A DNA stretch of 64,000 bases from Basidiobolus meristosporus CBS 931.73 (GCA_002104905.1 MCFE01000143.1:62001-126000), one strand, 5' to 3'; counted from the first letter of the stretch, positions 304 through 64,000 are shown. Notes: generated by a model from the sequence alone, not told the origin. Made by a program: numbers and translations.

Positions 304-3016
304 CTAAATGTTCATACTAACTAGTCCTAATTTTGACCTAAGATATTCAAACTTGTCTCTGGCTAATGGTTTGGTAAATATGTCTGCAATCATTTCATCT
401 GTAGGACAGTAAGCTAAGCTAACTAAGTTATTCTATATAGCTTCACGTATGAAATGATGTCTAATATCTATGTGCTTGGTTCTAGCATGAAAAGTTGAAT
501 TTCTACCTAATTGTATACATCCTTGATTATCTTGAAATAAAGTAATAGGCATTTTTTGACATAGGCCTAATTCTGTAAAAGCTTTCTTAACCACATTGCT
601 TCTTTTGTAGCTTCACAGGCTGCCATGTACTCTGCCTCTGTGGTAGAGAGTACTATGGTTGATTGCTGTCTTGAATTCCATGAAATTGCTCCTTTACAGT
701 AAAGAAAGGTGTATCCTGTGGTGGATCTTCTGTCTTGTAGATTTTGTCCCCAATCAGCATCAGAGTATCCCACAAGATCCTGTTCTGAATCCTTATGAGT
801 GTATCTTACGCAGATATCAGCAGTTCCTTTTAGGTATCTAAAGATCCGCTTAACTCCTGCAATATGATCAGATCCATAGTTCTGATTATGTTGGCTGACA
901 ACTCCCACTGAATATGAGATACCTGGACATGTTCCAAGCATGATATACATCAGACTGCTGAGCATAGACTGATAAGTAAAGTCAGGGCTTTCAGATGGCA
1001 CCAAGCTCTCTTGATTTGGTTGAGTTTTGACCAAGTCAAGGTTTGTCTCCATTGGGGTAGCTGCCAGTTTACAGTCTTCCATTTGGTACTTCTTTAGTAT
1101 ATCTTGAATAGACTTGGATTGGCTTAGGGTGATAGTCAGGGTACTTCTGTCTATGGAGAACTTGATCCCAAAGTAGTAATTAAGTTCTCCTAGATCAAAC
1201 ATCTTGAGCTCCTTTGATAGGCTGGATTTAGTCTCTTCCAATATTTCTAGGTTATTGGTGGCTATAATAAGATCATCCACGTATAGAGCTAATAGAACTG
1301 GATTTACTCTATCTGGCTTATAGTACATACTATAGTCAGCATTACTCCTTTTGAAACTCAAAGATTCCAAATAAGAATCTATCTTGCAACTCCAGGCTCT
1401 TGGTGATTATTTGAGACCATGTAGTGACTTTTTAAGCTTGCAGACCAAATGGGGGTTATCTTGGACAACAAACCCATCAGGCTGGTCCATATACACATGT
1501 CCTCATCAAGTTCTCCATTCAAAAATGCAGCTTTTACATCCATTTGATGAATAAAAAACTTATATTCGGCTGCAATAGCCAATATTAATCTGATGGAATT
1601 AAACTTGGCTACCGGTGCAAAGGTCTCAGTATAGTCAAGTCCTTGTGTTTGAGAGTATCCTTTGGCTACAAGTCTTGCTTTGTATCTTTCAACTGTACCA
1701 TTGGCCTTGTATTTTTTCTTGAAGACCCATCTGTATCCAATTGATTTTTGGTTGATTGGTAATTTGACTAAGTCCCAAGTTTGATATTCCATCAGGGCCT
1801 GATATTCCTCAGTCATTGCAGATCTCCAAAACTTTGTCTGAGGGCTCTTTAGGGCCTCATTTACAGTCTGGGGCTCATCAATATGGACTGAATAGGCATA
1901 GGCTAAGCTTGTACCCTCATTGATATAGTAATTTGGGCTATTTCTTGTCCGATTGGATCTCTGGGCATTTGATACTGGAATGATCACTTCTGAGATATTC
2001 CTGGGCACTGATTCTGGCTGGACAACAGTTGTAGAGTCCTCTGAAGTGAAAAAATTCTTATTGTTTTGCTCTGATTCAATCCTGACAATTGGTGGACTTG
2101 GGATCAGATTTTTGTCATCATCTGATGTCATTTTTGGGGAAAACTGTGAATTTTCATCAGACAACACATCCCTAGACTTGATCAGCTTCTTTGCTTTGGT
2201 ATTGTAGAGTCTGTATGCCTTACTCTCATTGCAATAGCCCAAAAATATGCATTTGACACTTTTTGGCTCAAATTTTGACTGATTTCCAGCCAGTTTTTTG
2301 GCATATGCTGTACACCCAAATATTCTTAGATAGTCAGCACTAGGTCTGTATCCACACCATGCTTCAAATGGAGTAGAATCATGAAGTATTCTGTTATAAC
2401 TCCTATTTTTAAGGTATACAGCAGTGGCAACTGATTCCACCCAAATATTATAGGATAATTTTTGATCATGGATCATAAATCTTGCCATATCAGTTATTGA
2501 TTTGTTAGAATGTTCTGTTACTCCATTTTGCTGTGGGGAGTATGGTACAGTAGTCTCTTGCTTTATTCCACAATTTTTGCAGAAGTGAATGAAGAGTTTT
2601 GAGGTATATTCTCCACCATTGTCAGAGCATATTTTCTTGATTTTTTCACCAGTTTCTCTCTCCACCATGGCTTTAAACTCCCTGAACTTAGACAGAGCTT
2701 CTTCCTTTCTCTCCATGAAGTAGATCCATGTGTATCTTGTATAATCATCAATAAAAGTGATTAAATACTTCATCCTGCCTAAGGATAAATTTTGCATAGG
2801 TCCACACAGATCTGAGTGAGTTAAATCTAATTTTTTATTGGTTTTGATTAGCCCAGAGCTCTTGAACAGTTGTCTGGCTTGTTTCCCATATATGCAGGCT
2901 TCACATTGCTCCAAATTAGCTGAGGGATCAATTTTCACTCCAGAAATTAGCTGATCTTTGATCATTTTACGCAAATAATCAAAATTGATGTGTGCAAATC
3001 TCCTATGCCAAAGCAT
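304..3016 (-). pseudogene. copia A1 pol (integrase-RT-RNase H), disrupted
   Basis: ORFs 1379-3016 and 567-1370 are joined by a frameshift near 1490. A premature stop lies at 567; the homologous end LGLVSMNI* lies at 304. Confidence 0.92.
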
Positions 3017-3842: not shown

Positions 3843-6512
3843 GAACATACCTCAAAACTCTTCATCCACTTCTGCAAAATTCATAGGATAAAGCAAGAAA
3901 CTACTGTACCATACTCCCCACAGCAAAAAGGAGTAGTAGAATGTGCTAACAGATCAAAAATTGATATGGCAAGATATATGATCCATGACCAAAAATTATT
4001 CTATGATTTTTGGGTGGAATCAGTTGCCACAGCTGTATACCTTAAAAATAGGAGTTACAATGAAATACTTTGTAATTCTACTCCATTTGAAGCATGGTAT
4101 GGATACAGACCAAGTGCAGAACATCTAAAAATAGTTGGATGTACAGCATATGCCAAAAAAACTGGCTGGAAATCAGTCAAAATTTGAGCCAAAAAGTGTC
4201 AAATGCATATTTTTGGGCTATTGCAATGAGAGTAAGGCATACAGACTCTACAATACCAAAGCAAAGAAGCTGATCAAGTCTAGGGATGTGTTGTCTGATG
4301 AAAATTCAAAATATTCCCCAAAAATGACATCAGATGATGACAAAAATCTGATCCCAAGTCCACCAATTGTCAGGATTGAATCAGAGCAAAACAATGAGAA
4401 TTTTTTTCACTTCAGAGGACTCTACAACTGTTGTCCAGCCAGAATCAGTGCCCAGGAATATCTCAGAAGTGATCATTCCAGTATCAAATGCCTGGAGATC
4501 CAATTGGACAAGAAATAGCCCAAATTACTATATCAATGAGGGTACAAGCTTAGCCTATGCCTATTCAGTCCATATTGATGAACCCCAGACTGTAAAAGAG
4601 GCCCTAAATAGCCCTCAGACGTAGTTTTGGAGATCTGCAATGACTGAGGAATATCAGGCCCTGATGGAATATTGAACTTGGGACTTAGTCAAATTACCAA
4701 TCAACCAAAAATCAATAGGATGCAGATGGGTCTTCAAGACAAAATACAAGGCAGATGGTACAGTTGAAAGATACAAAGCAAGACTTGTAGCCAAAGGATA
4801 CTCTCAAACAAAAGGACTTGACTATACTGAGACCTTTGCACCAGTAGCCAAGTTTAATTCCATCAGATTAATATTGGCTATTGCAGCCAAATATAAGTTT
4901 TTTATTCATCAAATGGATGTAAAAACTGCATTTTTGAATGGAGAACTAGATGAGGACATGTATATGGACCAGCCTGATGGGTTTGTTGTCCAAGATAACC
5001 CCCATTTGGTCTGCAAGCTTAAAAAGTCACTACATGGTCTCAAACAATCACCAAGAGCCTGGAGTTGCAAGATAGATTCTTATTTGGAATCTTTGAGTTT
5101 CAAAAGGAGTAATGCTGGCTATAGTATGTACTATAAGCCAGATAGAGTAAATCCAGTTCTATTAGCTCTATATGTGGATGATCTTATTATAGCCACCAAT
5201 AACCTAGAAACATTGGAAGTGACTAAATCCAGCCTATCAAAGGATTTCAAGATGTTTGATCTAGGAGAACTTGGTTACTACTTAGGGATTAAGTTCTCCA
5301 TAGACAGAAGTACCCAGACTATCACCCTAAGCCAATATAAGTATATTCAAGATATACTAAAGAAGTACCAAATGGAAGACTGTAAATTGGCAGCTACCCC
5401 AATGGAGACAAACCTTAACTTGGTCAAAACTCAACCAAATCAAGAGAGCTTGGTGCCATCTGAAAGCCCTGACTTTCCTTATCAATCTATGGCCAGCAGT
5501 CTGATGTATATCATGCCTGGAACACGTCCAGGTATCTCATATTCAGTGGGAGTTGTCAGCCAACATAATCAGAACTATGGATCTGATCATATTGCAGCAG
5601 TTAAGCGGATTTTTAGATACCTAAAAGGAACTGCTGATATCTGCTTAAGATACACTTATAAGGATTCAGAACAGCATCTTGTGGGATACTCTGATGCTGA
5701 TTGGGGACAAAATCTAGAAGACAGAAGATCCACCACAGGATGCACCTTTTTTTATTGTAAAGGAGCAATTTCATGGAACTCAAGAAAGCAACCAACCATA
5801 GCACTCTCTACCACAGAGGCAGAGAATATGGCAGCCTGTGAAGCTACAAAAGAAGCAATGTGGTTAAGAAAACTTTTTACAGATTTAGGCCTATGTCAAA
5901 AAACACCTATTACTTTATTTCAAGATAATCAAGGATGTATACAATTAGGTAGAAATCCAACTTTTCATGCTAGAACCAAGCACATAGATATTAGACATCA
6001 TTTCATACGTGAAGCTATATAGAATAACTTAGTTAGCTTAGCTTACTGTCCTACAGATGAAATGATTGCAGACATATTTACCAAACCATTAGCCAGAGAC
6101 AAGTTTGAATATCTTTGGTCAAAATTAGGACTACTTAGTATGAACATTTAGCTGAGTGGGAGTGTTGTAAAAATTTGTATTTCCACCTGAATATTCACCT
6201 AACATAGTCACTTACATCATCACCTTCAAATTCTAGAGAATGCTGACCAAAATTCCTTGTTGGGATTTACTTAGAATATTTTCACCAAAATACCAGGTAC
6301 CCAGTACATGAAAATTCTCAAAGTTGTCCAAACAGCCCCAAACTCTGCACACATGTTCTTGGAATCTTCCTTAACCTATTCCTAGTGTTTGTTATGCCAA
6401 GACCAGGGAAAAGTATAAATACTACTTTTACATTCAATAAATCATTAAGTGAAAGCCACATAATCACTTGTTCTCCCAAATCACTTCCACTATCTCCAAG
6501 ACTCTTACAACA
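3843..6512 (+). mobile_element. copia family A copy A2 (3' half: partial integrase, RT, RNase H, PPT, 3' LTR)
   Basis: Starts abruptly at EHTSKLFIHF next to the A1 LTR. ORFs 3819-4187, 4135-4518 and 4874-6022; pol end at 6151; PPT gagtgggag at 6154-6162; LTR 6163-6512. Confidence 0.93.
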
Positions 6513-21530: not shown

Positions 21531-24500
21531 TGTTATGATCTGCCGCTTAAATGTTTAAGTTAGATCAGTTTTTAGTCAAATCAATTAGTATATGTTTAGG
21601 TTATCAGTATATCAGTATTATCTATGAAATCAGTAGCATTAGTCAGCAAATGAATCAGCAGATCCTTATCAGACAGAAATAGATACATTAATTAGGATCT
21701 TATTGGGTGATGATGATGCAATCAAATGAGTCATCAGCCACAACCTACATTAGGAAATACAATTAGTCAGCAATTGATCTGGCAAAATGTATAAAAGGAG
21801 CTGCTGGAACCTCAATAAAAATCAGTTCAAGTTTTAGTGAATACAATACTAGCTAAACTCCCTATTCCTCTACAACTCTTATACCAAGACTTGTAACAGA
21901 AGATCAATGACTATGAAGAAGACCTGCAGGCTTATATACTTGGGAACTGCAAGTTTGACCTTGTACTTGGGAAAACCTGGCTATTTTGTCGTAATCCATC
22001 AATCAACTGGAGAACCCATGCTACTCAGATCCAAAAAGACATCAAGACCTATGAGCTATTACCTGCCAGGCTGGATTTCAACTTGGTCAATTCCAGTGTG
22101 TGTGAGACAAGTGAACTTAGCAAGACCCAGTTCTGTAGAGCACTTAGAAAAGGTACCCAAATGTTCCTCATGGCGGTATTACAGGTGGATTCCTCTACCC
22201 CGGCACCCCAGCAGGTCCAGACTCTCTTGAAGAAATATTCAGACGTGTTTCCAGATGAGCTTGTAAGCCTACCACCAGGCAGAGACGTGGATCAAGCCAT
22301 TGACACAGGAGATAGCCCTCCAGTGAGCAAGACACCTTACAGAATGAGTCCATTGGAATTGGAGGAAATGAAGAGACAAATTGATCAGCTATTAGAGCAA
22401 GGATACATCAGGCCCAGCAAGTCACCCTGGGGAGCACCAGTGCTTTTTGTGAAAAAGAAGGATGGAACACTTAGGATGTGCATTGACTACAGAGCCCTGA
22501 ACTCAGTTACCGTCAAGAATAAGTACCCCATACCTTGGATTGATGAGCTTTTGGACCAACTTAATGGAGCCACTATTTTCAGCAAGATTGACCTCATGTC
22601 AGGATACAACCAGATTAGGGTGAAACCAGAAGATATCCCTAAGACAGCATTCAGGACCAGATATGGACATTATGAGTACTTAGTCATGAGTTTTGGCCTC
22701 ACTAATGCCCCTGCAACATTCATGACGCTGATGCAGACTGTCTTTCAGGAGTACTTAGACAAGTTTGTGATAATCTACCTGGATGACATATTGATATACA
22801 GCAAGACAGAAAAGGATCACATGGTACACATTGAAAAGGTCTTGAAGAAACTAAGAGAGAACAAGCTCTATGGCAAGCTAGCCAAGTGTGAATTCTTCAA
22901 GGAACACGTAGAATATCTGGGACACATAGTGACTAGCACAGGAGTAACCTTAGACCCCAAGAAGGTGGAAGTAATCAAGAATTTGAAGCAGCCCCATAGC
23001 ATATCAGAACTCAGATCCTTCCTTGGAATGGTTTCCTATTATCAGAGATTTGTCAAGTCATTTGCAAGTATTGCAGCCCCTTTAACTGATATCCTCAAGA
23101 AAGACAATAACTACAAGTGGGACATAGCTTGTGAGACTGCCTTCCAGACGCTAAAGAATGAACTTGCTAAGCTGCCAAGCTTAAGAATACCAGACTTCAG
23201 AAAAGAGCTCACTCTATGCACAGATGCTTCAGATTATGCAATTGGTGGAGTGCTGAGCCAAGAACACAAGGGAAAGGACTACCCTGTTGCCTTTGAATCC
23301 AAGAAACTGAACTCAGCAGAACAAAACTATCCAGTCCATGAGAAGGAGATGCTTGCTATAATACACTGTTTGAAGACATGGAGATGCTATATTGAAGGTG
23401 TCAAATGCACTGTGAAGACTGATCATGCCTCCCTCAAGTATATATTTACTCAGAAGGTACTCTCTAGAAGAATGACAAGATGGAGTGAATACATTCAGCA
23501 ATTTGACCTGAAGATTGTCTACTGCCCTGGAAAAAACAACACGGTTGCTGATGCCTTATCAAGATTAGATCAAGTTGCACAACTCAACTTGGTGCATGAA
23601 TCAGATTGGCCTAGCCTATTACCAAAGTACTTGGAGGACCAAGCCATTCCTAATGAGGTGGATGAAGATATCAAGAAGATAATCCGTGATGAAGCCAGCA
23701 AATTTGTTGTACAGGATGAAACACTCTACCAAATTGTTGATGGAAGCCCTATTGCCTATTGTCCTTATGTTGCTTGCCTGGATTTTATACATAAGCTACA
23801 CAATGGATATGGACATCTTGGGATTGAAGGAACCTATAGCCTTGTGAAAGCAAGAGCATGGTGGCCCAGAATGAAACAAGATATTGAGAAGCTAGTGAAA
23901 ACATGCCCAAACTGCCAAATCAATCAAGGCCAGCCACAAAGAATTGCCAAACTCTTCCCTTTGGAGCCTGTAAGACCATTTGAGAGATGGGGAATTGACT
24001 TTATTGGAAGACTGCCAACTACCAGGAAATGCAACCGTTGGATCCTAGTAGCAATTGACCATGCCACTAAATGGCCAGTTGCTAAAGCTGTACCAATAGC
24101 CAGTGAACAAGAAGTTGCAAGTTTCATTTACCATGAGATCCTGATGAAATTTGGATGCCCTGTGGAGATCTTATCTGATAGAGGAGCAAACTTTATGGCA
24201 AAGACATTAGAGGCTTACCTGGAAATGCAGCAGATCAGACACTTGAAAACCTTGGCATATCACTCCAGAACTAATGGAGTCACTGAGCAGTTTAATGGTT
24301 TATTTGGAAAAATGCTGACCAAGTATGCAAATGGAGTTGTCAGTAGATGGGATGAGTATATAGACCAAGCACTCATTGCATGCAGAGTCAGAGTACACAA
24401 CACCACCCAGCAATCACCATTTTACTTAGTTTATGGATGTGAACCAAGGATTCCAGGAGTTCTCACACAACCAAAGCTTACAGACACCTTAGAAGATGAA

Positions 24501-25250
24501 CTCAGTCATCCAAGTAGACACCAGCAACTGGAACAAAGATGTCAAGAGGCACAGACCAAAGTATCTCAAAGTGCAGAAAAGATGAAGCAGAGATTTGATA
24601 AGACTATAGCACCAGAAGCATTGACAGTTGCAAACTTTGTATTGCTAAGAAACAACACTTGGAAGAAGTTTGAGCCACAATGGACAGGACCATTCAAGAT
24701 CATCAGAGAATGTCCATTTGCAACTTGCCAACTGGTGGACATACAAGGTAATATCCGGGAAGACTTAGTGCATAGGGACAGACTCAAGCGTGTAAGACTT
24801 GCTGATAATACCGGACCATCAAGATATTGGAATCACAAGAAAAGAGATTCAGGAGAACCCTCTCAACCTTAGTAGGGGAGAATGTTATGATCTGCCGCTT
24901 GAATGTTTAAGTTAGATCAGTGTTTAGTCAAATCAATTAGTATATGTTTAGGCTATCAGTATATCAGTATTATCTATGAAATCAGTAGCATTAGTCAGCA
25001 AATGAATCAGCAGATCCTTATCAGACAGAAATAGATACATTAATTAGGATCTTATTGGGTGATGATGATGCAATCAAATGAGTCATCAGCCACAACCTAC
25101 ATTAGGAAATACAATTAGTCAGCAATTGATCTGGCAAAATGTATATAAGGAGCTGCTGGAACCTCAATAAAAATCAGTTCAAGTTTTAGTGAATACAATA
25201 CTAGCTAAACTCCCTATTCCTCTACAACTCTTATACCAAGACTTGTAACA
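21531..25250 (+). mobile_element. Ty3/gypsy family D, young, 4-bp TSD CCAG, lacking PBS and gag
   Basis: LTRs 21531-21898 and 24883-25250 (368 bp; about 4 differences seen by eye). PPT AGTAGGGGAGAA at 24871-24882. CCAG at 21527-21530 and 25251-25254. Confidence 0.95.
22083..24872 (+). CDS. gypsy D pol, RT-RNase H-integrase (929-aa open frame)
   Basis: [32 protein letters not shown] zinc finger, GIDFIG and GPF motifs. No chromodomain is visible. A protease remnant (FDLVLGK) lies just upstream. Confidence 0.92.
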
Positions 25251-48812: not shown

Positions 48813-50996
48813 CTAAATGTTCATACTGACTAGTCCTAATTTTGACCTAAGATATTCAAACTTGTCTCTGGCTAATGGTTTGGTTAATATGTCTGCAATC
48901 ATTTCATCTGTGGGACAGTAAACTAAGCTAACTAAGTTATTCTCTATAGTTTCACATATGAAATGATGTCTAATATCCATGTGCTTGGTTCTAGCATGAA
49001 AAGTTGGATTTCTACCTAATTGTATACATCCTTGATTATCTTGAAATAAAGTAATAGGCGTTTTTTGACATAGGCCTAAATCTGTAAAAAGCTTTCTTAG
49101 CCACATTGCTTCTTTTGTAGCTTCACAGGCTGCCATATACTCTGCCTCTGTGGTAGAAAGTGCTATGGTTGGTTGCTTTCTTGAATTCCATGAAATTGCT
49201 CCTTTACAGTAAAGAAAGGTGTATCCAGTGGTGGATCTTCTGTCTTCCAAATTTTGTCCCCAATCAGCATCAGAGTATCCCACAAGATCCTGTTCTGAAT
49301 CCTTATAAATGTATCTTAAGCAGATATCAGCAGTTCCTTTTAGGTATCTAAAAATCCGCTTAACTGCTGCAATATGATCAGATCCATAGTTCTGATTATG
49401 TTGGCTGACTACTCCCACTGAATATGAGATATCTGGACGTGTTCCAAGCATGATATACATCAGACTGCTGATCATAGATTGATAAGGAAAGTCAGGGCTT
49501 GAAGATGGCACCAAGCTCTCTTGATTTGGTTGAGTTTTGACCAAGTTAAGGTTTGTCTCCATTGGGGTAGCTGCCGGTTTACAGTCTTCCATTTGGTACT
49601 TCTTTAGTATATCTTGAATATACTTTGATTGGCTTAGGGTAATAGTCTGGGTACTTCTGTCTATGGAGAACTTAATCCCTAAGTAGTAACTAAGTTCTCC
49701 TAAATCAGACATCTTGAACTCCTTAGATAGGCTGGATTTAGTCTCTTCCAATGTTTCTAGGTTATTGGTGGCTATAATAAGATCATCCACATATAGAGCT
49801 AATAGAACTGGATTTGCTCTATCTGGCTTATAGTATATACTATAGTCAGCATTACTTCTTTTGAAACTCAAGGATTCCAAATAAGAATCTATCTTGCAAT
49901 TCCAGGCGCTTGGTGATTGTTTGAGATCATATAGTGACTTTTTAAGCTTGCAGACCAAATGGGGGTTATCTTGGTCAACAAACCCATCAGGCTGGTCCAT
50001 ATACATGTCCTCATCAAGTTCTCCATTCAAAAATGCAGTTTTTACATCCATTTGATGAATAAAAAACTTATATTTGGCTGCAATAGCCAATATTAATCTG
50101 ATGGAATTAAACTTGGCTACTGGTGCAAAGGTCTCAGTATAGTCAAGTCCTTTTGTTTGAGAGTATCCTTTGGCTACAAGTCTTGCTTTGTATCTTTCAA
50201 TTGTACCATCAGCCTTGTATTTTGTCTTGAAGACCCATCTGCATCCAATTGATTTTTGGTTGATTGATAATTTGACTAAGTCCCAAGTTTGAATTTCCAT
50301 CAGGGCCTGATATTCCTCAGTCATTGTAGGTCTCCAAAACTTTGTCTGAGGGCTATTTAGGGCCTCTTTTACAGTCTGGGGTTCATCAACATGGACTGAA
50401 TAGGCATAGGCTAAGTTTGTACCCTCATTGATATAGTAATTTGGACTATTTCTTGTCTGATTGGATCTCAGGGCATTTGATACTGGAATGATCACTTCTG
50501 GGATATTCCTGGGAACTGATTCTGGCTGAACCATGGTTGTAGAGTCCTCTGGAGTGAAAAAATTTTCATTGTTTTGCTCTGATTCAACCCTGATAATTGG
50601 TGGACTTGAGATCAGATTTTTGTCATCATCTGATGTCATTTTTTGTGAAAATTTTGAATTTTCATCAAACAACACATCCCTGGACTTGATCAGCTTCTTT
50701 GCTTTGGTATTGTAGAGTCTGTATGCCTTACTCTCATTGCAGTAGCCCAAAAATATGCATTTTACACTTTTTGGCTCAAATTTTGACTGATTTCCAGCCA
50801 GTTTTTTGGCATATGCTGTACACCCAAATATTCTTAGATGTTCTGCACTTGGTCTGTATCCATACCATGCTTCAAATGCAGTAGAATCATGAAGTAGTCT
50901 GTTATAACTCCTATTTTTAAGGTATACAGCAGTGGCAACTGATTCCACCCAAAAATCATAGGATAATTTTTGATCATGGATCATAGATCTTGCCAT
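48813..50996 (-). CDS. copia A5 integrase C-terminus-RT-RNase H (727-aa open frame)
   Basis: RYKARLVAKGY, HQMDVKTAFLNG, YVDD, YSDADWG and ADILTKPL motifs. Confidence 0.9.
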   Translation of the reverse strand: MARSMIHDQKLSYDFWVESVATAVYLKNRSYNRLLHDSTAFEAWYGYRPSAEHLRIFGCTAYAKKLAGNQSKFEPKSVKCIFLGYCNESKAYRLYNTKAKKLIKSRDVLFDENSKFSQKMTSDDDKNLISSPPIIRVESEQNNENFFTPEDSTTMVQPESVPRNIPEVIIPVSNALRSNQTRNSPNYYINEGTNLAYAYSVHVDEPQTVKEALNSPQTKFWRPTMTEEYQALMEIQTWDLVKLSINQKSIGCRWVFKTKYKADGTIERYKARLVAKGYSQTKGLDYTETFAPVAKFNSIRLILAIAAKYKFFIHQMDVKTAFLNGELDEDMYMDQPDGFVDQDNPHLVCKLKKSLYDLKQSPSAWNCKIDSYLESLSFKRSNADYSIYYKPDRANPVLLALYVDDLIIATNNLETLEETKSSLSKEFKMSDLGELSYYLGIKFSIDRSTQTITLSQSKYIQDILKKYQMEDCKPAATPMETNLNLVKTQPNQESLVPSSSPDFPYQSMISSLMYIMLGTRPDISYSVGVVSQHNQNYGSDHIAAVKRIFRYLKGTADICLRYIYKDSEQDLVGYSDADWGQNLEDRRSTTGYTFLYCKGAISWNSRKQPTIALSTTEAEYMAACEATKEAMWLRKLFTDLGLCQKTPITLFQDNQGCIQLGRNPTFHARTKHMDIRHHFICETIENNLVSLVYCPTDEMIADILTKPLARDKFEYLRSKLGLVSMNI

Positions 50997-51862: not shown

Positions 51863-54077
51863 ATGGTAGTCTCTTGCTTTATCCCACGAATGTTGCAGAA
51901 GTGGATGAAGAGTTTTGAGGTATATTCTCCACCATTGTCAGAGCGTATTTTCTTGATTTTTTCACCAGTTTCTCTCTCAACCATGGCTTTAAACTCCCTG
52001 AGCTTAGACAGAGCTTCTTCCTTTCTCTCCATGAAGTAGACCCATGTGTATCTTGTATAATCATCAATAAAAGTGACTAAATACTTCATCCCGCCAAAGG
52101 ATAAATTTTGCATAGGTCCACACAGATCTGAGTGAATTAGATCTAATTTTTTCTTAGTTTTTGATTAACCCAGAGCTCTTGAACAATTGTCTGGCTTGTT
52201 TCCCATATATGCAGGCTTCACAGTGCTCCAAATCAGCTGGGGGATCAACTTTCACTCCAGAAATTAGCGGATCTTTGATCATTTTATGCAAATAATCAAA
52301 ATTGATGTGTCCAAATCTCCTGTGCCAAAGCATTGGTGTTTCTTCATTTAAGTTACTTATATTGGCCTCCAAATATGATGGAATGTAAGTCAACTTGTAT
52401 AGATTCTGATCTCTGATGCCCAAAGCAATATGGGCACCATTTTGATCAGTGATCCTGCATCCAGAGTTGTCAAAACCAAAACTGAGTCCTTCTGCTGTGG
52501 CCTTGCTTACAGAGAGTAGGTTCTTGGCTATTTCTGGTACATAGAGTACTTCTTTGAAGGTCAGTGTATGGCTTCCTTCACTGCTTCTTAGGTTTACTTG
52601 GATAGTTCCTTCTCCCAATGCATCAAGTGTTCTGTTGTCACCCATGAAAACCTTCTTAATTGGAATTTCTTGATATTGGGTAAAAAGTTCTTTTTGGTGT
52701 GTAAAGTGTTGAGAAGCTCCAGAGTCAATATACCACGTCTGAGAATCCTTGTTTGTGGTCATATTTAGTGCAGATATGAATAGTCTATCTTCAGTTGTTG
52801 CAGCATTTCCATATTCAGGCTTCTTTTGCTGATAATCTCTGTTTTTGAGACACCGGTCTGATGTGTGTCCTTTCCTTTTGGAGTAGTTGCAAAATAGGTT
52901 GCTGTTGCCTTTGTAGGGTCTTGGGTACCTCCTTTGTTGGTTATCATTGCTTATTAAAGCATTTTCTTCTTCCTTCTTATTGGCGCTTGATTTTCTTAAT
53001 TCTTCATCCAGGAGCCTTCCATATACGTAATTTAAGGTCAAATCTTCAGTTCTGGACTCTAGGGCTGATACAAGGCCCTGAAACCTGTCTGTCAGGCTAT
53101 TCAGGATGGTAACTATCATATCCTCATCAGTAGTTAGTACACCCACAGATTCCATCTCATCTACCAGCAGGGTAATTCTGTTAATTAGATTTTTCATTTC
53201 TTCTCCTGGCAGCATCTTTGTAGTAAAGAATTTTTGTCTCAGATACATTTTCTTGGCAGCTGAACATGACTGGTAGGTGTCTTCTAATGCCTTCCAGGCA
53301 TTCTTTGCCGTTTTTGTTCTTGAGCATTGAATTAGCAATTTGTCCTTGACATTAAGGCAAATGCAGTTAAAGGCACTTTGTTCTTTCTTCTGGTACTTTA
53401 AGGCTTCCTCTCCCACATTTTTAGGAGGGCATTCTTCTCCCATGACAATATCTCAAAGGCCTCTTTCTTGTGGCAGCATCTTCATCTTCACCTTCCACAC
53501 TTGGTGGCTAGATCCATCCAACTTTTCAGCAGAGGGAAAAATTCCAGTAATAACAGTAGTAGACCTTGCAGAGAGTGACAGCTCAGGGCCCATAACCTGT
53601 TGTAAGAGTCTTGGAGATATTGGAAGTGATTGGGAGGACAAGTAGATTATGTGGTTTTCACTTAATGATTTATTGAATGTAAAAGTAGTATTTATACTTT
53701 TACATGATCTTGGCATTACAAACATGTAGAATAGGTTAAGGAAGGTCCCAAGAACATGTGTGCAAAGTTTGGGGCTGTTTGGACAACTTTGAGAATTTTC
53801 ATGTTGTGGGTACCTGGTATTTTGGTGAAAATATTCTAAGTAAATCCCAACAAGGAATTTGGTCAGTATTCTCTAGGATCTGAAGGTAATGATCTAAGTG
53901 ACTAAGTTGGGTGAATATTTAGGTGGAATTACAAATTTTTACAACAGTATTTTGGTGAAAATATTCTAAGTAAATCCCAACAAGGAATTTGGTCAGTATT
54001 CTCTAGGATCTGAAGGTAATGATCTAAGTGACTAAGTTGGGTGAATATTTAGGTGGAATTACAAATTTTTTACAACA

Positions 54078-55914: not shown

Positions 55915-57190
55915 ATGGAAACCTACACTGTCTCAGTAAAAGATACTTGGCACGAGCATGATGGCGTGACTTTCTACACAAAACTCTTTGAGGTAGAATA
56001 CATTAACTTAATTTCAAGGCTTCTTCTCATTCATCCGACCACTGTAGGTAACTCCTAAACCAAGAGCCACGGTGACACTCATTCACGGATTGGGAGAGCA
56101 CTGTGACCGTTATGAGGAGCTTGGAAAATACTTAGGAGAAAGAGGAATTCAAGTGTTTACATACGACCAACGTGGTTTTGGGAAAACCGGGTACCGTAAC
56201 CCTCCCTTGGGCCATAGCGGTGGTTTCGAAAAGGTGCTACAGGATGTCGATTACTTTGTAGAGCGGTCGAGCTTTTCGGATCTGTCGGTCCCTCATTTTC
56301 TGGTATTGGCGAGTTAGATATGTAAGCATCCGACCCGATTGTAATATTAGATCGTTTTGTAGTTTGGTCACTCGATGGGTGGTATGATTGTTTTAAATTA
56401 CGGTGCCGTGTATAGCACACGCGAAATAGCCGGAATCATCGCATCAGGTGCAGTAGGGCAATTGATTAGTAAGTGAATGTTGGCTATAGCTGATACTTTG
56501 GCTACGTAGCACCCTGTATTCAAGCTGGGAAAGGTTATATCGTTTCTGGCATCCAAGCTAAAGCTCTCGGGTTCTTGGGATCGATCCCGATTATCAACAC
56601 GCTTCCGATTCAATCCAACATCAGTTAAGGCCTATACCCAGTGCGTCATCACGTCCACCAGTACTAACCCGTCCAGTAGAGGCTGAACATCTCAGTTTTA
56701 ATGAAAAATCCAATCAAGAGTATATGGGCAGCATGTATAACTTTGGCTACGCATCACTCAGTTGCCGTAAGTGGCCCATCACCTCATTTTATCACCCGCC
56801 ATGTTAACTCGCGCTTCAGTTTCGGATATCTTTTATTACGGGAAACTACTTCTCACTGATCGTTACAAAAACTTTTTGACTCCAGTGCTGCTGACACATG
56901 GTGAACAAGACCAGATCACCAGGTAAACAGAGTGTCATACTTTTATATCTTGCGATATACTAATCAATGCAATAGCTGTGCGGCAACAACAGAGTTTCAT
57001 GACCTTCTGGAAGCAGACAAAACTCTCAAGATCTGGCCAAACTCAGCTCACGAACGTACGTAAACCCAAATGCTATCAATCATTCAGCCATTAATATAAG
57101 TTTGCAGTGCACTTCGAGGACAACAAACAGGAAGTAATGGAGTACTATTACCAATGGCTGGACAACAAAATTCACCGGGAAGAAAAGTAG
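55915..57190 (+). CDS. Alpha/beta-hydrolase, monoacylglycerol lipase/lysophospholipase family (Hydrolase_4, Yju3-like); 8 exons
   Basis: Exon 1 55915-55992, exon 2 56048-56302, exon 3 56363-56447, exon 4 from 56510, with short GT-AG introns throughout. The spliced frame gives LIHGLGEHCDRY, YDQRGFG, FGHSMGG (nucleophile Ser), LTHGEQD (Asp) and AHELHFE (His). Confidence 0.9.
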
Positions 57191-57518
57191 GCCAGAAGCT
57201 CGAATTCTTATGTTCTGCATAGCCTAATTTGCATCTATTTTCCAGCTGGCCCAGCTTGGCTAAAGCATCCAATATTGACTGAGGTGCTCTTCCAGGATTC
57301 ACTAAGGGTATCTAACTATAACGGACTATTAAACCGCAAATTCTGTCAATACTACAAGCTGTCTACGCCTTTCAAGGTCCCGATATTGATAAACAATTGG
57401 GCATCAATGATTAAATATATACGTATCCCCACATGGTTTTCAATTTGAGTGAAACTGGTTGTAGAGATAAAAGAATCATTGCCATGACCTTTATTCAGTA
57501 TTGCATGCATTTTCACAT

Positions 57519-57782
57519 TTACCAATTATCCTCGTCATGGTGGCCCGATTCATCGCCAGGACCATCCTCATCCTGGTCGTCTCCGTAGTCACAGAATGGA
57601 CCAGTGGCATCCTTTTCCCGGCAAACTGTCTGCTCTCCGCACATAGTCTCCACCCATTCATCGTTGACGCAGCGGATAATAGCTCGGTCATCCTCTGTGG
57701 AGCATTTACTTTCAAGGTTGTTGCAAGCCAGAACAATCTGACTCAAAAGAGCAAGCACAAGAATGGTTGCGTGGAACTTCAT
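57519..57782 (-). CDS. Small secreted 6-Cys CBM19-like protein 1 (87 aa, acidic tail)
   Basis: Signal-peptide-like MKFHATILVLALLSQIVLA; C-x6-C-x10-C-x4-W-x4-C-x5-C-x9-C; D/E-rich tail. Confidence 0.88.
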   Translation of the reverse strand: MKFHATILVLALLSQIVLACNNLESKCSTEDDRAIIRCVNDEWVETMCGEQTVCREKDATGPFCDYGDDQDEDGPGDESGHHDEDNW

Positions 57783-58051
57783 TAGATTATTGCCAGTGAT
57801 GAAGAGTGCGTGATCTATTTATGTACAGCTTTGGAATCTGAGGTCCTTTCAATTCAGGAGCAGTCGCATGCTAATACTGCACAGCTTGCGTTGCCTTTGC
57901 AGAGGAAACCCCTTGGTCCCCCGTACTAAATAGTCAAATCGTTCTGGATAATTCAATACCCTGGGACCTCATGGATGAAAACTATTTAAGCAAAAAGCCT
58001 AATATAGAGTAATCTGCTAGAGACTTGTGGAAGTATAGGGCGAGGTTGGCT

Positions 58052-58058
58052 TATAAAA
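58052..58058 (+). promoter_or_regulatory. Putative TATA box of protein 2
   Basis: TATAAAA ~80 bp upstream of ATG 58136; a similar TATAAAT lies at ~59109 upstream of protein 3. Confidence 0.45.
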
Positions 58059-58135
58059 GTGGGGCATCTTCTATCGATGACACTCAACAAGTGCCAATTC
58101 CTCCACAGTATCGTCTCCGTTGAAAGATTACACCA

Positions 58136-58411
58136 ATGAAACTCTACGCCACGCTGATATTCTTCGCTATTTTGAGTCAGGTTGCGCATGCCTGTCAAAG
58201 TATGGAAAGTAAGTGCTCCACTGAGGATGATCGTACAATCGTTCGCTGCGTCAATGATGAATGGGTCGAAACCAAATGTGGAGAGGGAACAGTCTGCCAA
58301 GAAAAGCGTCATACTGGGCCGTTCTGCGATTATGAAGGACATGATGACTGGGAGGAGGATAATGATGGAGAAGATCATGGTGATGGTGATGATGAAGAGA
58401 GCGAAGATTAA
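58136..58411 (+). CDS. Small secreted 6-Cys CBM19-like protein 2 (91 aa, acidic tail)
   Basis: Signal peptide ending AHA|C; CVNDEWVETKCGEGTVC core; tail DDWEEDNDGEDHGDGDDEESED. Confidence 0.88.
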   Translation: MKLYATLIFFAILSQVAHACQSMESKCSTEDDRTIVRCVNDEWVETKCGEGTVCQEKRHTGPFCDYEGHDDWEEDNDGEDHGDGDDEESED

Positions 58412-59182
58412 AAAGATGCAAGACGTTCGAGTTGTATTTGGCTTACAATAAACAGAAGATATTCTCTTGAACAATGTTTCTTTTCGCCAGATTTAAAGGA
58501 TCTCGTGCCGAAAATATCCATCTTTTGTCATCTAAATTGTGACTACTGTGACAGGTAATATCCCGAGTACTTGGATATTTGAAGATTGTATGTTACCACA
58601 CGAGTGGTACTGAAGATTGTATATTACCATGCGAGTGGAGGTGCTTTCATCTTGGCCCACCTCCATCTCCTAATCACCCTGCCATCATGTAATACTAAGC
58701 TTTGTACATAAACCTGTAAGTTCAGCTTCAAAGGTGATAGTAGATAGGATTACTGCACATATTGCACTTCTGCATGGAAATGCTCCATTACTCTACCCGT
58801 CGCAGTTTCTGCTACTCCACAATTCTGCAGCTGCACATTTACAATTATAGAAATTAAGTTGGTAACTCGTTATCACACCATTTGCCGTCATTCCAAGCTT
58901 TTGCAGTGGTGTCTTACTCCTTAATACCTAAATTTATCTCTCCATTTCACTCCAGTGCTAGGGGGTCTGTGATACTTCTCCGGATGGATGTAGGGGATTT
59001 GCAATGGTAAGGACTTTTAGAAGCGTATTGGTCATTGATACGCAGTTATGGGGAAAGGAGCACTATATTTAGAAACTATTAGTAACCACATAGAGATACC
59101 ATTTACTACTATAAATACCTTGAAAGCTACTTCCCAAATGACATACTCACAGCCTATCCTCTACTTCAACTACGATCATACC

Positions 59183-59452
59183 ATGAGAATCTGCACTGCA
59201 TTTGTTGTTCTTGCCTTTCTGAGCCAGGTAGTGATGGGATGCACCCAAAACGAAAGCAAATGTTCCTCAGAGGATGCCCAGACTATCGTCCGATGCGTCA
59301 ACGATGGCTGGGTTGATACGAAGTGCGGACAAGGAACAGTCTGTCGTCAAGGTGACCACACTGGGCCATTTTGTGATCACGAGGATGTGGAAGACGATCA
59401 AGAGTGGGGCCAAGATGATGATGAGGAGGAGGAGGAGGAGGACAATGAATGA
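59183..59452 (+). CDS. Small secreted 6-Cys CBM19-like protein 3 (89 aa, poly-D/E tail)
   Basis: The start is placed at MRICTAFVVLAF by homology with the paralogues. CVNDGWVDTKCGQGTVC core. Confidence 0.87.
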   Translation: MRICTAFVVLAFLSQVVMGCTQNESKCSSEDAQTIVRCVNDGWVDTKCGQGTVCRQGDHTGPFCDHEDVEDDQEWGQDDDEEEEEEDNE

Positions 59453-59589
59453 TACATCGTATAGTAATAATGATATTATATGTCTACCACTATCCAAATA
59501 TCCTCTAAATAATAAAGCTCATCAGTAAGTGCAATCAATGCTATGAATCTGTGATAATATCATACTATTGGCCATTCTCCTGATACTTC

Positions 59590-59680
59590 TCGTTGTCACA
59601 TTAACTATCAGTCCTTGTCATTGTCCCCATCACCGCTTGATCAGAAGGTCTAGAGCAATTGGTGCAGCATAGACTCTCAT
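59590..59680 (-). pseudogene. Truncated paralogue of the secreted family
   Basis: MRVYAAPIALDLLIKR* followed by GDNDKD-like tail remnants, with the Cys module missing. The family upstream motif ctgatttatattcacc is retained at ~59742-59757. Confidence 0.65.
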
Positions 59681-60099
59681 GATTCGATTGTTTTATTCGA
59701 GGTATTAAAAGCGTTCAACGGCACCCTCGCCTAACCCTTTGCTGATTTATATTCACCAAGTAAAAGCTAAGTTATAGCGCCAACGAAATTTACTCTATTC
59801 AGATGAACAACCATAATCCCATCTACTTTCTAGTGAACTATCGTAGCTTGCAAGTAACTACAAAAAGCTGTGACCATCAAGTATAAATCGTATTGGCATT
59901 TGTCCAGATTCGAAAACGTGATCTAATATGGCTATCAAGAATAGCACAAGACAGACAAAGGCAAGGTATTGAGACGACAGCTCTTGTGAAATATTACTTT
60001 ATTATTTAGTACAGCTAGTGTCGGCAGATCTATAAGCTAAAGCAGAGTTCTTGATACTTCTCTGCAACAATACTAATTTCATATACAGCACAGTCCGGA

Positions 60100-60396
60100 C
60101 TAGTGACCATGGTGGCGGTCATCCCAGTGCTCGTCGTGGTCTCCATCCCAGTGACCGTCATGATCCCCATCCCAATGATCATCGTGATCCCAGCCATCAT
60201 GGTCACAGAATGGTCCGGTGTGATCCTCCTCATGACAGACTGTCTCCTTGCCACACTTCGTCTCCACCCAGTCGTCGTTGACACAGCGGATAATGGTGCG
60301 GTCATCCTCGGACGAGCACCGGCTTTCATCGTGGGTGCATCCAATCACCACCTGGCTGAGAAAGGCCAAAGCAATCAGTGCAACGTAGACTCTCAT
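60100..60396 (-). CDS. Secreted CBM19-like protein 4 with His/Asp/Trp repeat tail (98 aa)
   Basis: MRVYVALIALAFLSQVVIG|CTHDESRC...; tail DHDGW-DHDDHWDG-DHDGHWDG-DHDEHWDD-RHHGH. Confidence 0.9.
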   Translation of the reverse strand: MRVYVALIALAFLSQVVIGCTHDESRCSSEDDRTIIRCVNDDWVETKCGKETVCHEEDHTGPFCDHDGWDHDDHWDGDHDGHWDGDHDEHWDDRHHGH

Positions 60397-60467
60397 GATT
60401 TGGCTGTTGTATTCGAAATATGGAAAGTAAGGCACTGATGGGTATCATTCAACGGCATCCTTGACTG

Positions 60468-60475
60468 ATTTATAT
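60468..60475 (-). promoter_or_regulatory. Conserved TATA-like box of the tandem units
   Basis: ATATAAAT lies ~72-79 bp upstream of the ATG, with identical context at 61478-61485 and 63473-63480 and a variant at ~62465-62471. Confidence 0.55.
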
Positions 60476-61085
60476 TCACCAGCTCACGCGATATGAGCTT
60501 CCGTTAAATTGTAGTGCCAATAGAACTCACTGAATACAAATGAATCGCATCGATCATCCTTACCCTGCTTTGATAGCCTAGACTCCTTAATTTTGCCAAC
60601 TGACTGCTACTGCACACGCACTCGCCAATTTCCCCCGCCTGATGGATGTCTTGGAGAGACTCGAGTGGATAAAAGAGACCCTATGTCATTCGGCCTTGAC
60701 GCATATTCCAGAAGCATACTGCATTTAGGTGATGTTGTGAAGACTGGTGTCATGTGACATAAAAAGTGGCTATCCGACTCGGGATTTCCTGGATAGCATC
60801 AGTCTACATTCCATTGAAGTTTATTTGATAAATGCCATACCTTCAGCTAAATATTATTGTGAAATATGCTTAGCACTTGGTATAACAACACGGCGTCATC
60901 AAGTATGTATCACAACCACAATCCTCATGATTCAAACATGCGATTGGATGTTACAGGACAGACGAAGGTAAGGTGAATAAAGACAACAAATGATGTAGGA
61001 AGTGATTTATTATTAAGTGCAATCAGCGACAGCAGGTCTTTAAACCAGTACAAAGCTCTTTATATCGTTCACAAAGTAATCCTGA

Positions 61086-61406
61086 CTAGTGATCACGGTG
61101 GCGGTCATCCCAGTGCTCGTCGCGGTCTCCATCCCAGTGACCGTCGTGATCCCCATCCCAGTGACCGTCATGATCCCCATCCCAATGATCATCGTGATCC
61201 CAGCCATCATGGTCGCAGAATGGCCCGGTGTGATCCTCCTCACGACAGACTGTCTCCTTGCCACACTTCGTCTCCACCCAGTCGTCGTTGACACAGCGGA
61301 TAATGGTGCGGTCATCCTCGGACGAGCACCGGCTTTCATTGTGAGTGCATCCAATCACCACCTGGCTGAGAAACGCCAAAGCAATCAGTGCAACGTAGAC
61401 TCTCAT
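61086..61406 (-). CDS. Secreted CBM19-like protein 5 with His/Asp/Trp repeat tail (106 aa)
   Basis: Same architecture with one extra 24-nt/8-aa repeat. Confidence 0.9.
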   Translation of the reverse strand: MRVYVALIALAFLSQVVIGCTHNESRCSSEDDRTIIRCVNDDWVETKCGKETVCREEDHTGPFCDHDGWDHDDHWDGDHDGHWDGDHDGHWDGDRDEHWDDRHRDH

Positions 61407-62098
61407 GGTTTGGCTGTTGTATTTGAAGTATGGAGAGTAAGATACTGATGGGTATCATTCAACGGTATCCTTGACTGATTTATATTCACCAGCTCACGCG
61501 ATATGGGCTTCCGTTAAATTGTAGTGCCAATAGAACTCACTGAATACAAATGAATCGCATCGATCATCCTTACCCTGCTTTAGTAGCCTAAACCCTGTAA
61601 TTTTACTGACTAGCAGCTGCTACTACTACATACAAACACACAAATCCCCCGCATGGTGAATATCTTTGAGTGGCTCGAACAGATGAAGGAGACCTCATGT
61701 GGATCGACAACAGTGCGTATACCAACCCCATACAGTATTTAAGTGATCTGGTGAAGGATGGTGTCAAGTGGCATCAAGTTATCTTGCATACCCCCATTAT
61801 ACATTCTCTTGAACTATCTGCTGATTTTCAATGTCGTGAATGCCATTTTAGCAGTTACTACAAAAAGCTGTGGTGATCAAGCACGTACTGTAGCGGCAAT
61901 TTCGAATTTCGAATATATGATCCTATATTGTTGTCGAGAATAGCTCAAACCAGGCAACGACAAATTACTGAGATAAGAACTATTATACGATATTATTTTA
62001 TTATTAGGCATTATCTGTGTCATCAGGTCTAGAAGCCGACATAAGGTTCTCAATGTTTTTCTTCGACAATACCACTATCATAGACAACGCAATCTTGA

Positions 62099-62395
62099 CT
62101 AGTGATCATGGTGGCCGTCATCCCAGTGCTGGTCATCGTCTCCATCCCAGTGCTCATCGTGGTCCCCTTCCCAATGGTCATCGTGATCCCAGCCATCATG
62201 GTCGCAGAATGGCCCGGTGTGATCCTCCTCACGACAGACTGTCTCCTTGCCACACCTCGTCTCCACCCAGTCGTCGTTGACACAGCGGATAATGGTGCGG
62301 TCGTCGTCGGACGAGCACCGGCTTTCATCGTGGGTGCATCCAATCACCACCTGAATCAGAAGGGCCAAAGCAGCCAGCACAACATAGACTCTCAT
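62099..62395 (-). CDS. Secreted CBM19-like protein 6 with His/Asp/Trp repeat tail (98 aa)
   Basis: Same architecture; the most diverged of copies 4-7. Confidence 0.9.
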   Translation of the reverse strand: MRVYVVLAALALLIQVVIGCTHDESRCSSDDDRTIIRCVNDDWVETRCGKETVCREEDHTGPFCDHDGWDHDDHWEGDHDEHWDGDDDQHWDDGHHDH

Positions 62396-63104
62396 GATTC
62401 GATCGTTGTTTTGGCAATAACAAAAAAGCGGTGCTGATGGGTTTCATTCAACGAAATTTTGGCTCTTATATCTACGGACTCATGCAATGCTAGCTTCCGC
62501 AAAGTTGTAGTGCCAACAGAATTCACTTTATTTAAACGAATAGCATCATGCTTCTTTTCCCTGCTTTGATAGTTTAGACTCCTTATTTTTACAAAATGCC
62601 TAGCACTATCACTACTACACACACGCACGCACGCCCATAAATCCCCCCTGCTAGTAGAACGTCTGGAAGTGTATCGAACGGATATAAAAGACGCTGTGTT
62701 GATCGACACTAATGCATACTAATTTCACACTGCATTCGAGTGATGTTGCGAAAGATGGTGACATGAGACATAAGAGAGTAGTCACCTGACACGCGTTGTC
62801 TTAGATAGCCTCATACTACTATTGATTTTAATATGGTATGTTACTTTACTTTCTATGCATTCTAGCACAGTAAGGGTAGCAGCTACTAAAAACATATGAC
62901 CATCAAGTACATCGTAGTGGTGATTGTTCACATTCGAATACGTGATCTGATATAGCCATCCAAAATGACAAAGGACAAGTATTACAAGATTGCATGAAAT
63001 TATTTATTGTTAAGTACTATCAGTATAAGCAGGCCTATAAATCAACGCAGAGTTCCGAATACCTTTCTACAACAATGCTGGCATTATATGATAGGCAGCT
63101 CTAG

Positions 63105-63401
63105 CTAGTGATCGTGATGGCGGTCATTCCGGTGCTCGTCGTGGTCTCCATCCCAGTGACCGTCATGATCCCCATCCCAATGATCATCGTGATCCCAGCC
63201 ATCATGGTCACAGAATGGCCCGGTGTGATCCTCCTCACGACAGACTGTCTCCTTGCCACACTTCGTCTCCACCCAGTCGTCGTTGACACAGCGGATAATG
63301 GTGCGGTCATCCTCGGACGAGCACCGGCTTTCATTGTGGGTGCATCCGATCACCACCTGGCTGAGAAAGGCCAAAGCAATCAGTGCAACGTAGACTCTCA
63401 T
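63105..63401 (-). CDS. Secreted CBM19-like protein 7 with His/Asp/Trp repeat tail (98 aa)
   Basis: Same architecture; start placed at MRVYVAL by homology. Confidence 0.9.
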   Translation of the reverse strand: MRVYVALIALAFLSQVVIGCTHNESRCSSEDDRTIIRCVNDDWVETKCGKETVCREEDHTGPFCDHDGWDHDDHWDGDHDGHWDGDHDEHRNDRHHDH

Positions 63402-64000
63402 GGTTTGGCTGTTGTATTTGAAGTATGGAGAGTAAGGCACTGATGGGTATCATTCAACGGCATCCTTGACTGATTTATATTCACCAGCTCACGCGATATG
63501 GGCTTCCGTTAAATTGTAGTGCCAATAGAACTCACTGAATACAAATGAATCGCATCGATCATCCTTACCCTGCTTTAGTAGCCTAGATTCCCTAATTCTA
63601 TTCACCGGTTACTACTGCTACTACTACTACTACTACACACACATGCAAGCGGCTCGAATGGATGACGGAGAATATCCGTTTATCGGCACCAGTGCATGCA
63701 GCAACCTCATACTGCATTTGTGTGGCGTTTTGAAGGATGGTGTCAAGTAGCATCAGCAAATGATCCTGAATAACCCCACTCTACTTTCTATTGAACTATC
63801 GTTGATTGCAAATAACTACAAAAGGCTGTGACCATCAAGTATAAATCGTATTGGCATTTGTCCGGATTCGAATACGTGATCTTATATGGCTATCAAGAAT
63901 AGCACAAGACAGGCAAAGGCAAGGTATTGAGAGACGAGAGCTCTCGTGTAATATTGCTTTATTAATAAGCGCAACCAGTGGTAGCCTATCTATAAATAAA

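Follow-up and report, generated by a model that had tools for sequence, protein, structure and literature searches.

A tandemly amplified family of small, charge-tailed proteins with a CBM19-related module in Basidiobolus

A stretch of 64,000 nucleotides from contig MCFE01000143.1 of Basidiobolus meristosporus CBS 931.73 (contig positions 62001-126000; hereafter the window, in which positions are counted from the first base) carries part of a tandem array of small genes, each encoding a signal-like N-terminus, a six-cysteine module and a low-complexity charged tail. On the evidence of sequence comparison, these genes form a real, strongly conserved and undescribed family that is restricted to Basidiobolus, and their module descends from repeats of the CBM19 type. 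In yeast and Mucoromycota, CBM19 (PF03427) forms the C-terminal module of GH18 chitinases (Cts1, for example). What is new here is a genus-specific, amplified family whose CBM19-derived module is joined to a tail in which Asp and His make up 60% of the residues and Trp stands at regular intervals. The fungus that carries it lives in the animal gut and is occasionally pathogenic to humans.

The gene array in B. meristosporus and B. ranarum

Scanned in six frames with a regular expression, the window yielded exactly seven matches to C-x6-C-x10-C-x4-W-x4-C-x5-C-x9-C, within 57591-63344, and all seven sit in uninterrupted Met-to-stop open reading frames (ORFs) of 87-106 codons. The seven intact, intronless paralogues proposed in a first-pass annotation of this DNA were thus recovered exactly, as was the cysteine pattern given for them. 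The module length of 46 residues given there had to be corrected to 45, counted from the first to the last Cys. The low-complexity charged tail attributed to every copy was seen in all seven translations. As a tblastn query against the window, each copy retrieved the other six with E values of 1e-24 to 1e-40 and no further match below E 0.1; 31 positions were invariant among the seven proteins.

Two tail classes were present in the window, and every copy had a signal-like N-terminus. Copies 1-3 carried Asp/Glu-rich tails with few His residues. Copy 1 (87 residues; 57519-57782, minus strand; module at 57591-57725) had a 23-residue Asp/Glu-rich tail with a charge of about -12, and copy 2 (91 residues; 58136-58411, plus strand; module at 58193-58327) had a 27-residue acidic tail with a charge of about -18. 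The 25-residue Glu/Asp tail of copy 3 (89 residues; 59183-59452, plus strand; module at 59240-59374) ended in a run of GAG codons (repeat at 59423-59442). Copies 4-7, all on the minus strand, had His-rich tails built from 2.5-4 units of a 24-nt repeat that encodes the octapeptide HWDGDHDx. Copy 4 (98 residues; 60100-60396; module at 60205-60339) possessed a 34-residue His/Asp/Trp tail with 3.0 repeat units at 60120-60191. The tail of copy 5 (106 residues; 61086-61406; module at 61215-61349) was 42 residues long, with 4.0 units at 61106-61201. Copies 6 (98 residues; 62099-62395; module at 62204-62338) and 7 (98 residues; 63105-63401; module at 63210-63344) each had a 34-residue tail, with 3.8 units at 62101-62190 and 2.5 units at 63137-63196, respectively.

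In all intact copies the N-terminus comprised an n-region with Lys or Arg, a hydrophobic core of 11-13 residues and small residues at positions -3 and -1 before the first Cys (V-I-G, for example), and AlphaFold2 modelled this region as a helix. The predicted cut after V-I-G in copies 4-7 would leave a mature N-terminus Cys-Thr-His (in copy 4, codons 60337-60339 down to 60331-60333 on the minus strand), with His at position 3 as in amino-terminal Cu/Ni-binding (ATCUN) sites. This His was absent from the acidic-tail copies 1-3. The residues N-E-S after the first Cys form an N-x-S glycosylation sequon in copies 3, 5 and 7. The sequon was not conserved, the other copies and all B. ranarum copies having D-E-S or M-E-S.

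The suggested continuation of the array beyond the window was found on the same 155,646-bp contig, which carries 12 intact copies and one decayed copy in total. The locus L001 of MCFE01000143.1 overlaps the window exactly from base 59204 to the window end. The intact copies are ordered as three at the left (on the minus, plus and plus strands), seven on the minus strand and two on the plus strand. The decayed copy, interrupted by an in-frame stop, separates the minus-strand block from the plus-strand pair (L001 8265-8300, about 67468-67503 on the window scale). The seven minus-strand copies are near-identical (synonymous divergence, dS, of about 0.04-0.08) and were recovered as a young clade in a nucleotide tree of the 144-nt module. 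As a means of telling orthology from lineage-specific expansion, the module tree was set aside because its resolution was too poor.

A second haplotype or homeologue was divided between MCFE01000604 and MCFE01001087. The proteins of its copies 1-3 were identical to those of the main contig (copy 1 lying in L005), whereas its right-hand plus-strand copies numbered three (112, 127 and 114 residues; L004 2355-4731), against two in the main contig (112 and 122 residues; L001 9100-10369). Octapeptide numbers also differed between the haplotypes. Gene copy number and octapeptide number are therefore polymorphic within the strain. Together with the near-identical minus-strand block, these differences agree with the earlier description of the cluster as expanding.

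In Basidiobolus ranarum, contig JASJQH010007384 carried nine copies on a single strand, of which six were intact, a seventh ran off the contig end and two were damaged (L002 3472-3633 and 8717-9208). One damaged copy lacked a start codon and was cut short by a stop early in its tail, past which the sequence still resembled coding sequence for a tail; in the other the signal-peptide region was replaced.

The module has changed little at the protein level. The ratio of non-synonymous to synonymous divergence (dN/dS; Nei-Gojobori, ratio of sums) was 0.05 in comparisons between the species, 0.06 among the B. meristosporus copies and 0.04 among those of B. ranarum. Synonymous sites were saturated between old paralogues, and between copies 1 and 5 we counted 15.5 non-synonymous and 20.5 synonymous differences (dN 0.16, dS 2.8). 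Of the 19 intact copies, 13 had a TATA-like box at 50-130 nt ahead of the ATG (8% expected by chance) and 16 had an AATAAA signal at 50-130 nt past the stop (5% by chance). In copy 2 these signals stand at -84 and +36, and in copy 4 at -78 and +97. Both persist even where the flanks have diverged. By these signatures, the copies are independent transcription units under strong purifying selection.

Relatives of the family were confined to the genus in both protein and metagenome searches. A word-indexed search of 5.8 billion clustered proteins returned just four Basidiobolus clusters, and an exhaustive search with a hidden Markov model (HMM) of the module detected no family relatives outside Basidiobolus among 1.84 billion cluster representatives. 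Nor were any detected in Joint Genome Institute (JGI) metagenome contigs. All database relatives come from B. meristosporus and B. ranarum and are entered as “hypothetical proteins”. The family had not been recognised in the first-pass annotation, and we likewise found no name for it; a literature search found no paper on the family or on its tail motif HWDGDH.

Descent and predicted fold of the module

The likeness to the CBM19 domain that had been noted in the core of the module proved to be a real, remote homology, reached through a bona fide CBM19 intermediate. Compared directly with PF03427, the best of ten members was copy 2 (E 0.037, 14.5 bits), below the cut-off of 20.1 bits; two copies gave a sub-threshold CBM_19 match and most members gave none. 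The absence of a catalytic domain was also borne out, the ORFs being only 87-122 residues long and Pfam offering nothing beyond this sub-threshold match. The HMM search of the 1.84 billion representatives recovered, besides the family itself, one genuine outsider (P0007, E 2e-9), a protein of 251 residues from Logan run ERR14048323 with a predicted signal peptide and four tandem modules. P0007 scores above the Pfam cut-offs for CBM_19 (6.9e-11, 42.4 bits) as well as CBM_14 (9.6e-7, 29.3 bits; cut-off 22.1). Its closest relative is K493DRAFT_373193 of B. meristosporus (P0013), to which it is 80% identical; the nearest kin of the module therefore lie in the same genus. Two further hits of this search were rejected as spurious. 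The matched region of a 7,596-residue protein carried bacterial cadherin-like and immunoglobulin-type (Big_9) domains, and in a protein resembling G-protein-coupled receptors the match was a repeat containing ESKC.

Aligned with the repeats of P0007 by hhalign, the family gave a probability of 95.4% (E 1.8e-8). The six Cys residues and N, W, V, G, T and D were invariant in the joint alignment, in which the family and the CBM19 repeats share a C-x-N-x-x-W-V hairpin, a C-G-x-G-T-x-C turn and an ending of aromatic-C-D. Relative to the CBM19 repeats, the family carries a three-residue acidic insertion between Cys2 and Cys3. The Basidiobolus proteins with four CBM19 modules (P0013, P0007) have the same cysteine spacing apart from this indel. 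They differ from the family in bearing four modules per chain, in lacking an Asp/His/Trp tail and in sequence (26-33% identity to the family). We suggest that this 4xCBM19/CBM14 protein type likely represents the ancestor type of the tail-bearing family. In the usual context CBM19 is appended to GH18, whereas in this family it stands alone with a charged low-complexity tail. Both P0013 and P0007 have a short His/Ser/Gly linker ahead of the last module.

The structure of the module was modelled with confidence by AlphaFold2. As a lone domain it reached a predicted local distance difference test (pLDDT) score of 90.0 from a 20-row alignment, all five models scoring at least 86, and in the full-length model of copy 5 it scored 83-88. 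The model is a five-stranded, disulfide-rich mini-domain of 49 residues. It was compared with 48,161 Protein Data Bank (PDB) representatives in a structure scan independent of Foldseek (VIA), in which the strongest matches were the peritrophin-A domain of EHEP and Der p 23 (both Z 5.5). These were followed by Avr4 of Cladosporium fulvum (CfAvr4; Z 4.8, 48 of 49 residues aligned, root-mean-square deviation (rmsd) 2.2, template modelling (TM) score 0.71), Avr4 of Pseudocercospora fuligena (PfAvr4; Z 4.7), Blo t 12 and the CBM14 of CHIT1 (both Z 4.4), tachycitin (Z 3.7) and the antifungal protein PAFC (Z 3.5, 29% identity over 45 residues). Seven of the nine top matches were CBM14-type modules (rmsd 1.9-2.4, with 45-48 of the 49 residues aligned), and unrelated rows scored Z 3.0 or less. 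Foldseek agreed, with probabilities of 0.87-1.00 for Der p 23, EHEP and Avr4 and TM scores of 0.6-0.71. The confident model and its matches to a chitin-binding fold of the CBM14 type answer the structure prediction that the first-pass annotation had called for. From the model, the module is predicted to be a divergent, CBM19-derived member of the CBM14/19 (peritrophin-A/tachycitin) group of disulfide-knotted beta folds. A PDB sequence search with the family profile returned nothing at E up to 10, and one with a P0007-type profile returned only noise (Sushi domains of complement factor H), so no solved close relative exists. A likeness to protease inhibitors (pacifastin/Kazal) was very weak (Z 2.2) and was discarded.

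The tachycitin and PAFC matches raise the question of whether the proteins are antimicrobial or antifungal mini-proteins, tachycitin-like or bubble-protein/PAFC-like, that act against chitin-containing competitors in dung or gut. A weak Pfam Bubble match in the sister protein P0007 (E 0.048) points the same way, and genes for antimicrobial peptides are often amplified in tandem and diversified. However, the antifungal-protein matches are weaker than the CBM14 ones, the module is under purifying and not diversifying selection, and the family is strongly anionic at neutral pH (the module at about -5, in addition to its tail), whereas most antimicrobial peptides are cationic. We consider this role very unlikely.

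CBM-only secreted proteins are known as effectors of plant pathogens, among them Avr4, LysM and CBM18 lectins. The Avr4 proteins (CBM14) of C. fulvum and P. fuligena are, like the family, small stand-alone proteins without a catalytic domain (secretion being a prediction in the family), and their structures match the module over 46-48 of 49 residues at 15-19% identity. They are single genes of plant pathogens, whereas the family forms a 12-copy array in an animal-gut fungus. An additional helix at the N-terminus and the absence of a charged tail also set Avr4 apart from the family (PMC6128652). With the animal peritrophin-A/CBM14 proteins (Der p 23, EHEP, the chitin-binding domain of CHIT1, Blo t 12 and tachycitin) the module shares a disulfide-knotted beta-hairpin core. 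Those proteins belong to another kingdom and bear no comparable tail, and the family lacks a CBM_14 match in sequence.

The charged tail and a proposed function

Across both species the tails consist of 38% Asp, 23% His, 14% Glu, 8.6% Trp and 8.5% Gly, five residues that make up 92% of the composition, and a hydrophobic anchor is absent. In the His class of B. meristosporus the Trp residues are spaced 8 apart, and in B. ranarum 6 to 24 apart. That the composition is kept while the repeat patterns differ between the species argues for selection on bulk chemistry. Calculated with generic pKa values, the net charge of the tail is -12 to -38 at pH 7.4, while at pH 3 it is +6 to +15 in the His class and about neutral in the acidic class. 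The tail is predicted to be disordered, with pLDDT below 50 in the AlphaFold2 model. No curated family matched it, a full-length Pfam scan at E up to 10 giving noise only (Tad3, TrAA12). We also considered the octapeptide as a calcium loop of the form D-x-D-x-D-G and dropped this reading, as DGDHDG occurs in some repeats and other repeats have Asp or Glu in place of the Gly. By established coordination chemistry, a peptide this rich in Asp and His binds divalent cations in vitro.

The roles put forward in the first-pass annotation, namely metal chelation, mineral nucleation, chitin masking and wall hardening, are candidate functions. We rate the prospect that the module binds chitin as somewhat better than even. 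An N-D-x-W hairpin and a Phe before the last Cys are invariant in the family. The comparison with CfAvr4, in which chitin binding relies on an NDN motif and Trp100 (PMC6128652), was made at the level of the motif.

We tentatively favour, with slightly less than even confidence, the reading that these tandemly amplified, predicted secreted proteins form a chitin-docked, cation-binding and pH-switchable coat. Once the signal peptide was cleaved, the module would dock on chitin, either in the fungus's own wall or in insect remains in gut or dung, and the docked protein would display its tail as a polyanionic, His-rich brush. The brush would bind divalent cations (Zn, Cu, Ni, Ca), and in the His-rich class its strong negative charge at neutral pH would give way to a positive one at the acidity of a stomach. 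Chitin would in this way acquire a pH-switchable, metal-loading coat on its surface, with gene amplification and variable repeat number tuning dose and tail length. Basidiobolus is a herptile gut symbiont that is dispersed by insects (PMC9391592), and a change of sign with pH would suit its cycling among the acid stomach and intestine of insectivorous herptiles, dung and soil. Should chitin binding by the module and metal binding by the tail both prove true, the family would offer a simple means, of natural origin, for placing a pH-switchable, metal-binding polyelectrolyte on chitin, and would bear on wall biology, gut-passage survival, metal nutrition and biomaterials.

Several points weigh against this coat. 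The signal peptide was judged by eye alone, so that secretion is a prediction. Cation binding by the tail would follow from its composition alone, and the Pfam scan matched no known metal- or calcium-binding family (zincophores of the Pra1/Zps1 type, thrombospondin type 3 or EF-hand-like). No member reaches the Pfam CBM_19 cut-off directly, and no window copy matched CBM_14 (PF01607) at E up to 10. The Z scores of 4-5.5 are modest, though for a domain of just 49 residues. Two aromatics of the CBM19 repeats, the Tyr before Cys2 and the Phe before Cys3, are Ser and Ile in the family. The top structure matches, EHEP and Der p 23, are reported not to bind chitin, and the residues critical for such binding vary from member to member of the fold (PMC10619976). 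One member of the Avr4 family is reported to bind de-esterified pectin and not chitin, and to disturb Ca2+ cross-links (PMC8104879).

The same observations would fit re-use of the CBM14/19 fold for another ligand, such as dietary polyphenols or tannins, another polysaccharide or a protein, with the tail aiding capture or precipitation. EHEP, which shares the best Z score, binds phlorotannin (PMC10619976), the pectin-binding Avr4 relative offers a second precedent, and the loss of the two aromatics is in keeping with a changed ligand. On the other hand, the nearest sequence relatives of the family are true CBM19 repeats, the invariant N-x-x-W hairpin and the aromatic before the last Cys have been kept under strong purifying selection, and fungal members of the clan bind chitin by default. 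We judge such a re-use of the fold to be unlikely.

If chitin is the ligand, the tail could still serve another end than the loading of cations. As in Avr4, which shields chitin from chitinases (PMC6128652), the module might coat the chitin of the fungus's own wall, with the charged tail repelling chitinases sterically or electrostatically and metal binding being incidental. The chitinases would come from the stomachs of insectivorous hosts, from gut bacteria or from competitors. Such a shield is consistent with the stand-alone CBM14/19-fold module without a catalytic domain, with the CfAvr4 structure match and with life in the herptile gut and dispersal by insects. A stoichiometric coat would fit the high gene dosage, and the reversal of charge at acid pH would matter in the stomach. 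However, a shield leaves unexplained the high content of His and Trp that has been kept across the species, and we hold it to be an unlikely alternative to the cation-binding coat.

The cation-binding coat has a more far-reaching form, in which the family would give the fungus an equivalent of the chitin-protein-metal composites of animals. Animal chitin-matrix proteins (mollusc Pif, crustacean CAP-1 and the His-rich proteins of squid beak and Nereis jaw) likewise combine a chitin-binding unit with an Asp- or His-rich region, and these regions bind Ca or Zn within the chitin composite. By this analogy, and it is an analogy only, the module would serve as the anchor on chitin, and through the Asp/His/Trp tails the wall, such as that of thick-walled zygospores or gut-stage cells, would take up Zn, Cu or Ca. 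The wall might thereby be hardened or mineralised, or it might hold a tethered metal reservoir or zincophore that switches charge from stomach to intestine. We know of no mineral or metal-hardened structure in Basidiobolus, and consider a composite of this kind quite unlikely.

Public annotation and genomic neighbourhood

Most of the family is missing from the public annotation, in which nine of the 12 genes have no protein. When three window copies lacking annotation were sought by exact sequence in public assemblies, no record of them turned up, and hence no transcript evidence there. Six of the minus-strand copies lie beneath a public gene model of 479 residues on the opposite strand (window 60109-64000, plus strand, continuing to L001 6408), and antisense ORFs of 111-119 residues are open opposite each His-tail gene. 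Taken at face value, these facts would make the small genes non-functional repeated ORFs or an artefact of annotation or assembly, and the antisense model the real gene, the more so as the antisense ORFs are longer than the sense ones. We regard this as extremely improbable. The antisense model has only a faint FHA_2 match, and its openness is explained by the codon make-up of the tail, since GAY, CAY, TGG and GGN codons give rise to no stop codon when reverse-complemented. In contrast, the proteins read from the sense strand have been conserved (dN/dS of about 0.05) both across the two species and across copies of either orientation; they show CBM19 homology, a confident predicted fold and signal-like N-termini, and it is on the sense side that TATA-like boxes and poly(A) signals are found. 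The 479-residue model is probably a mis-annotation that hides real genes.

The public model of copy 3 (P0003) also appears to be in error. It has 134 residues and starts at 59048, 45 codons upstream of the Met of the family signal peptide (extension 59048-59182). The TATA-like box of copy 3 stands at -73 (about 59110), downstream of the ATG of the public model, so the N-terminal extension is probably not translated and probably wrong. With nine of 12 genes unannotated and six covered by a wrong-strand model, there is an annotation gap, and surveys of the Basidiobolus secretome have therefore undercounted the family.

The array begins directly 3′ of a multi-exon alpha/beta-hydrolase gene (Hydrolase_4; 55915-57282, plus strand), which flanks it on the left and is not a family member. 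This gene was called on the second haplotype (L005 6868-8235; Hydrolase_4 and Abhydrolase matches) and was positioned in the window by its offset from copy 1, with a matching ORF fragment at 56072-56317. The right end of the array, which lies outside the window, adjoins three PTR2 peptide-transporter genes. These are present on both haplotypes (L001 11044-20369 and L004 5406-14731) and have no evident functional link to the array. Upstream of about 55 kb the window consists mostly of retroelement ORFs, and the array borders this transposon-rich stretch. ORFs of the Copia type (RVT_2, rve, gag) and of the Gypsy type (RVT_1, RNase H, integrase) were found at 1379-3016 (minus strand), 4874-6022 (plus), 22083-24872 (plus), 48813-50996 (minus) and 52154-53443 (minus).

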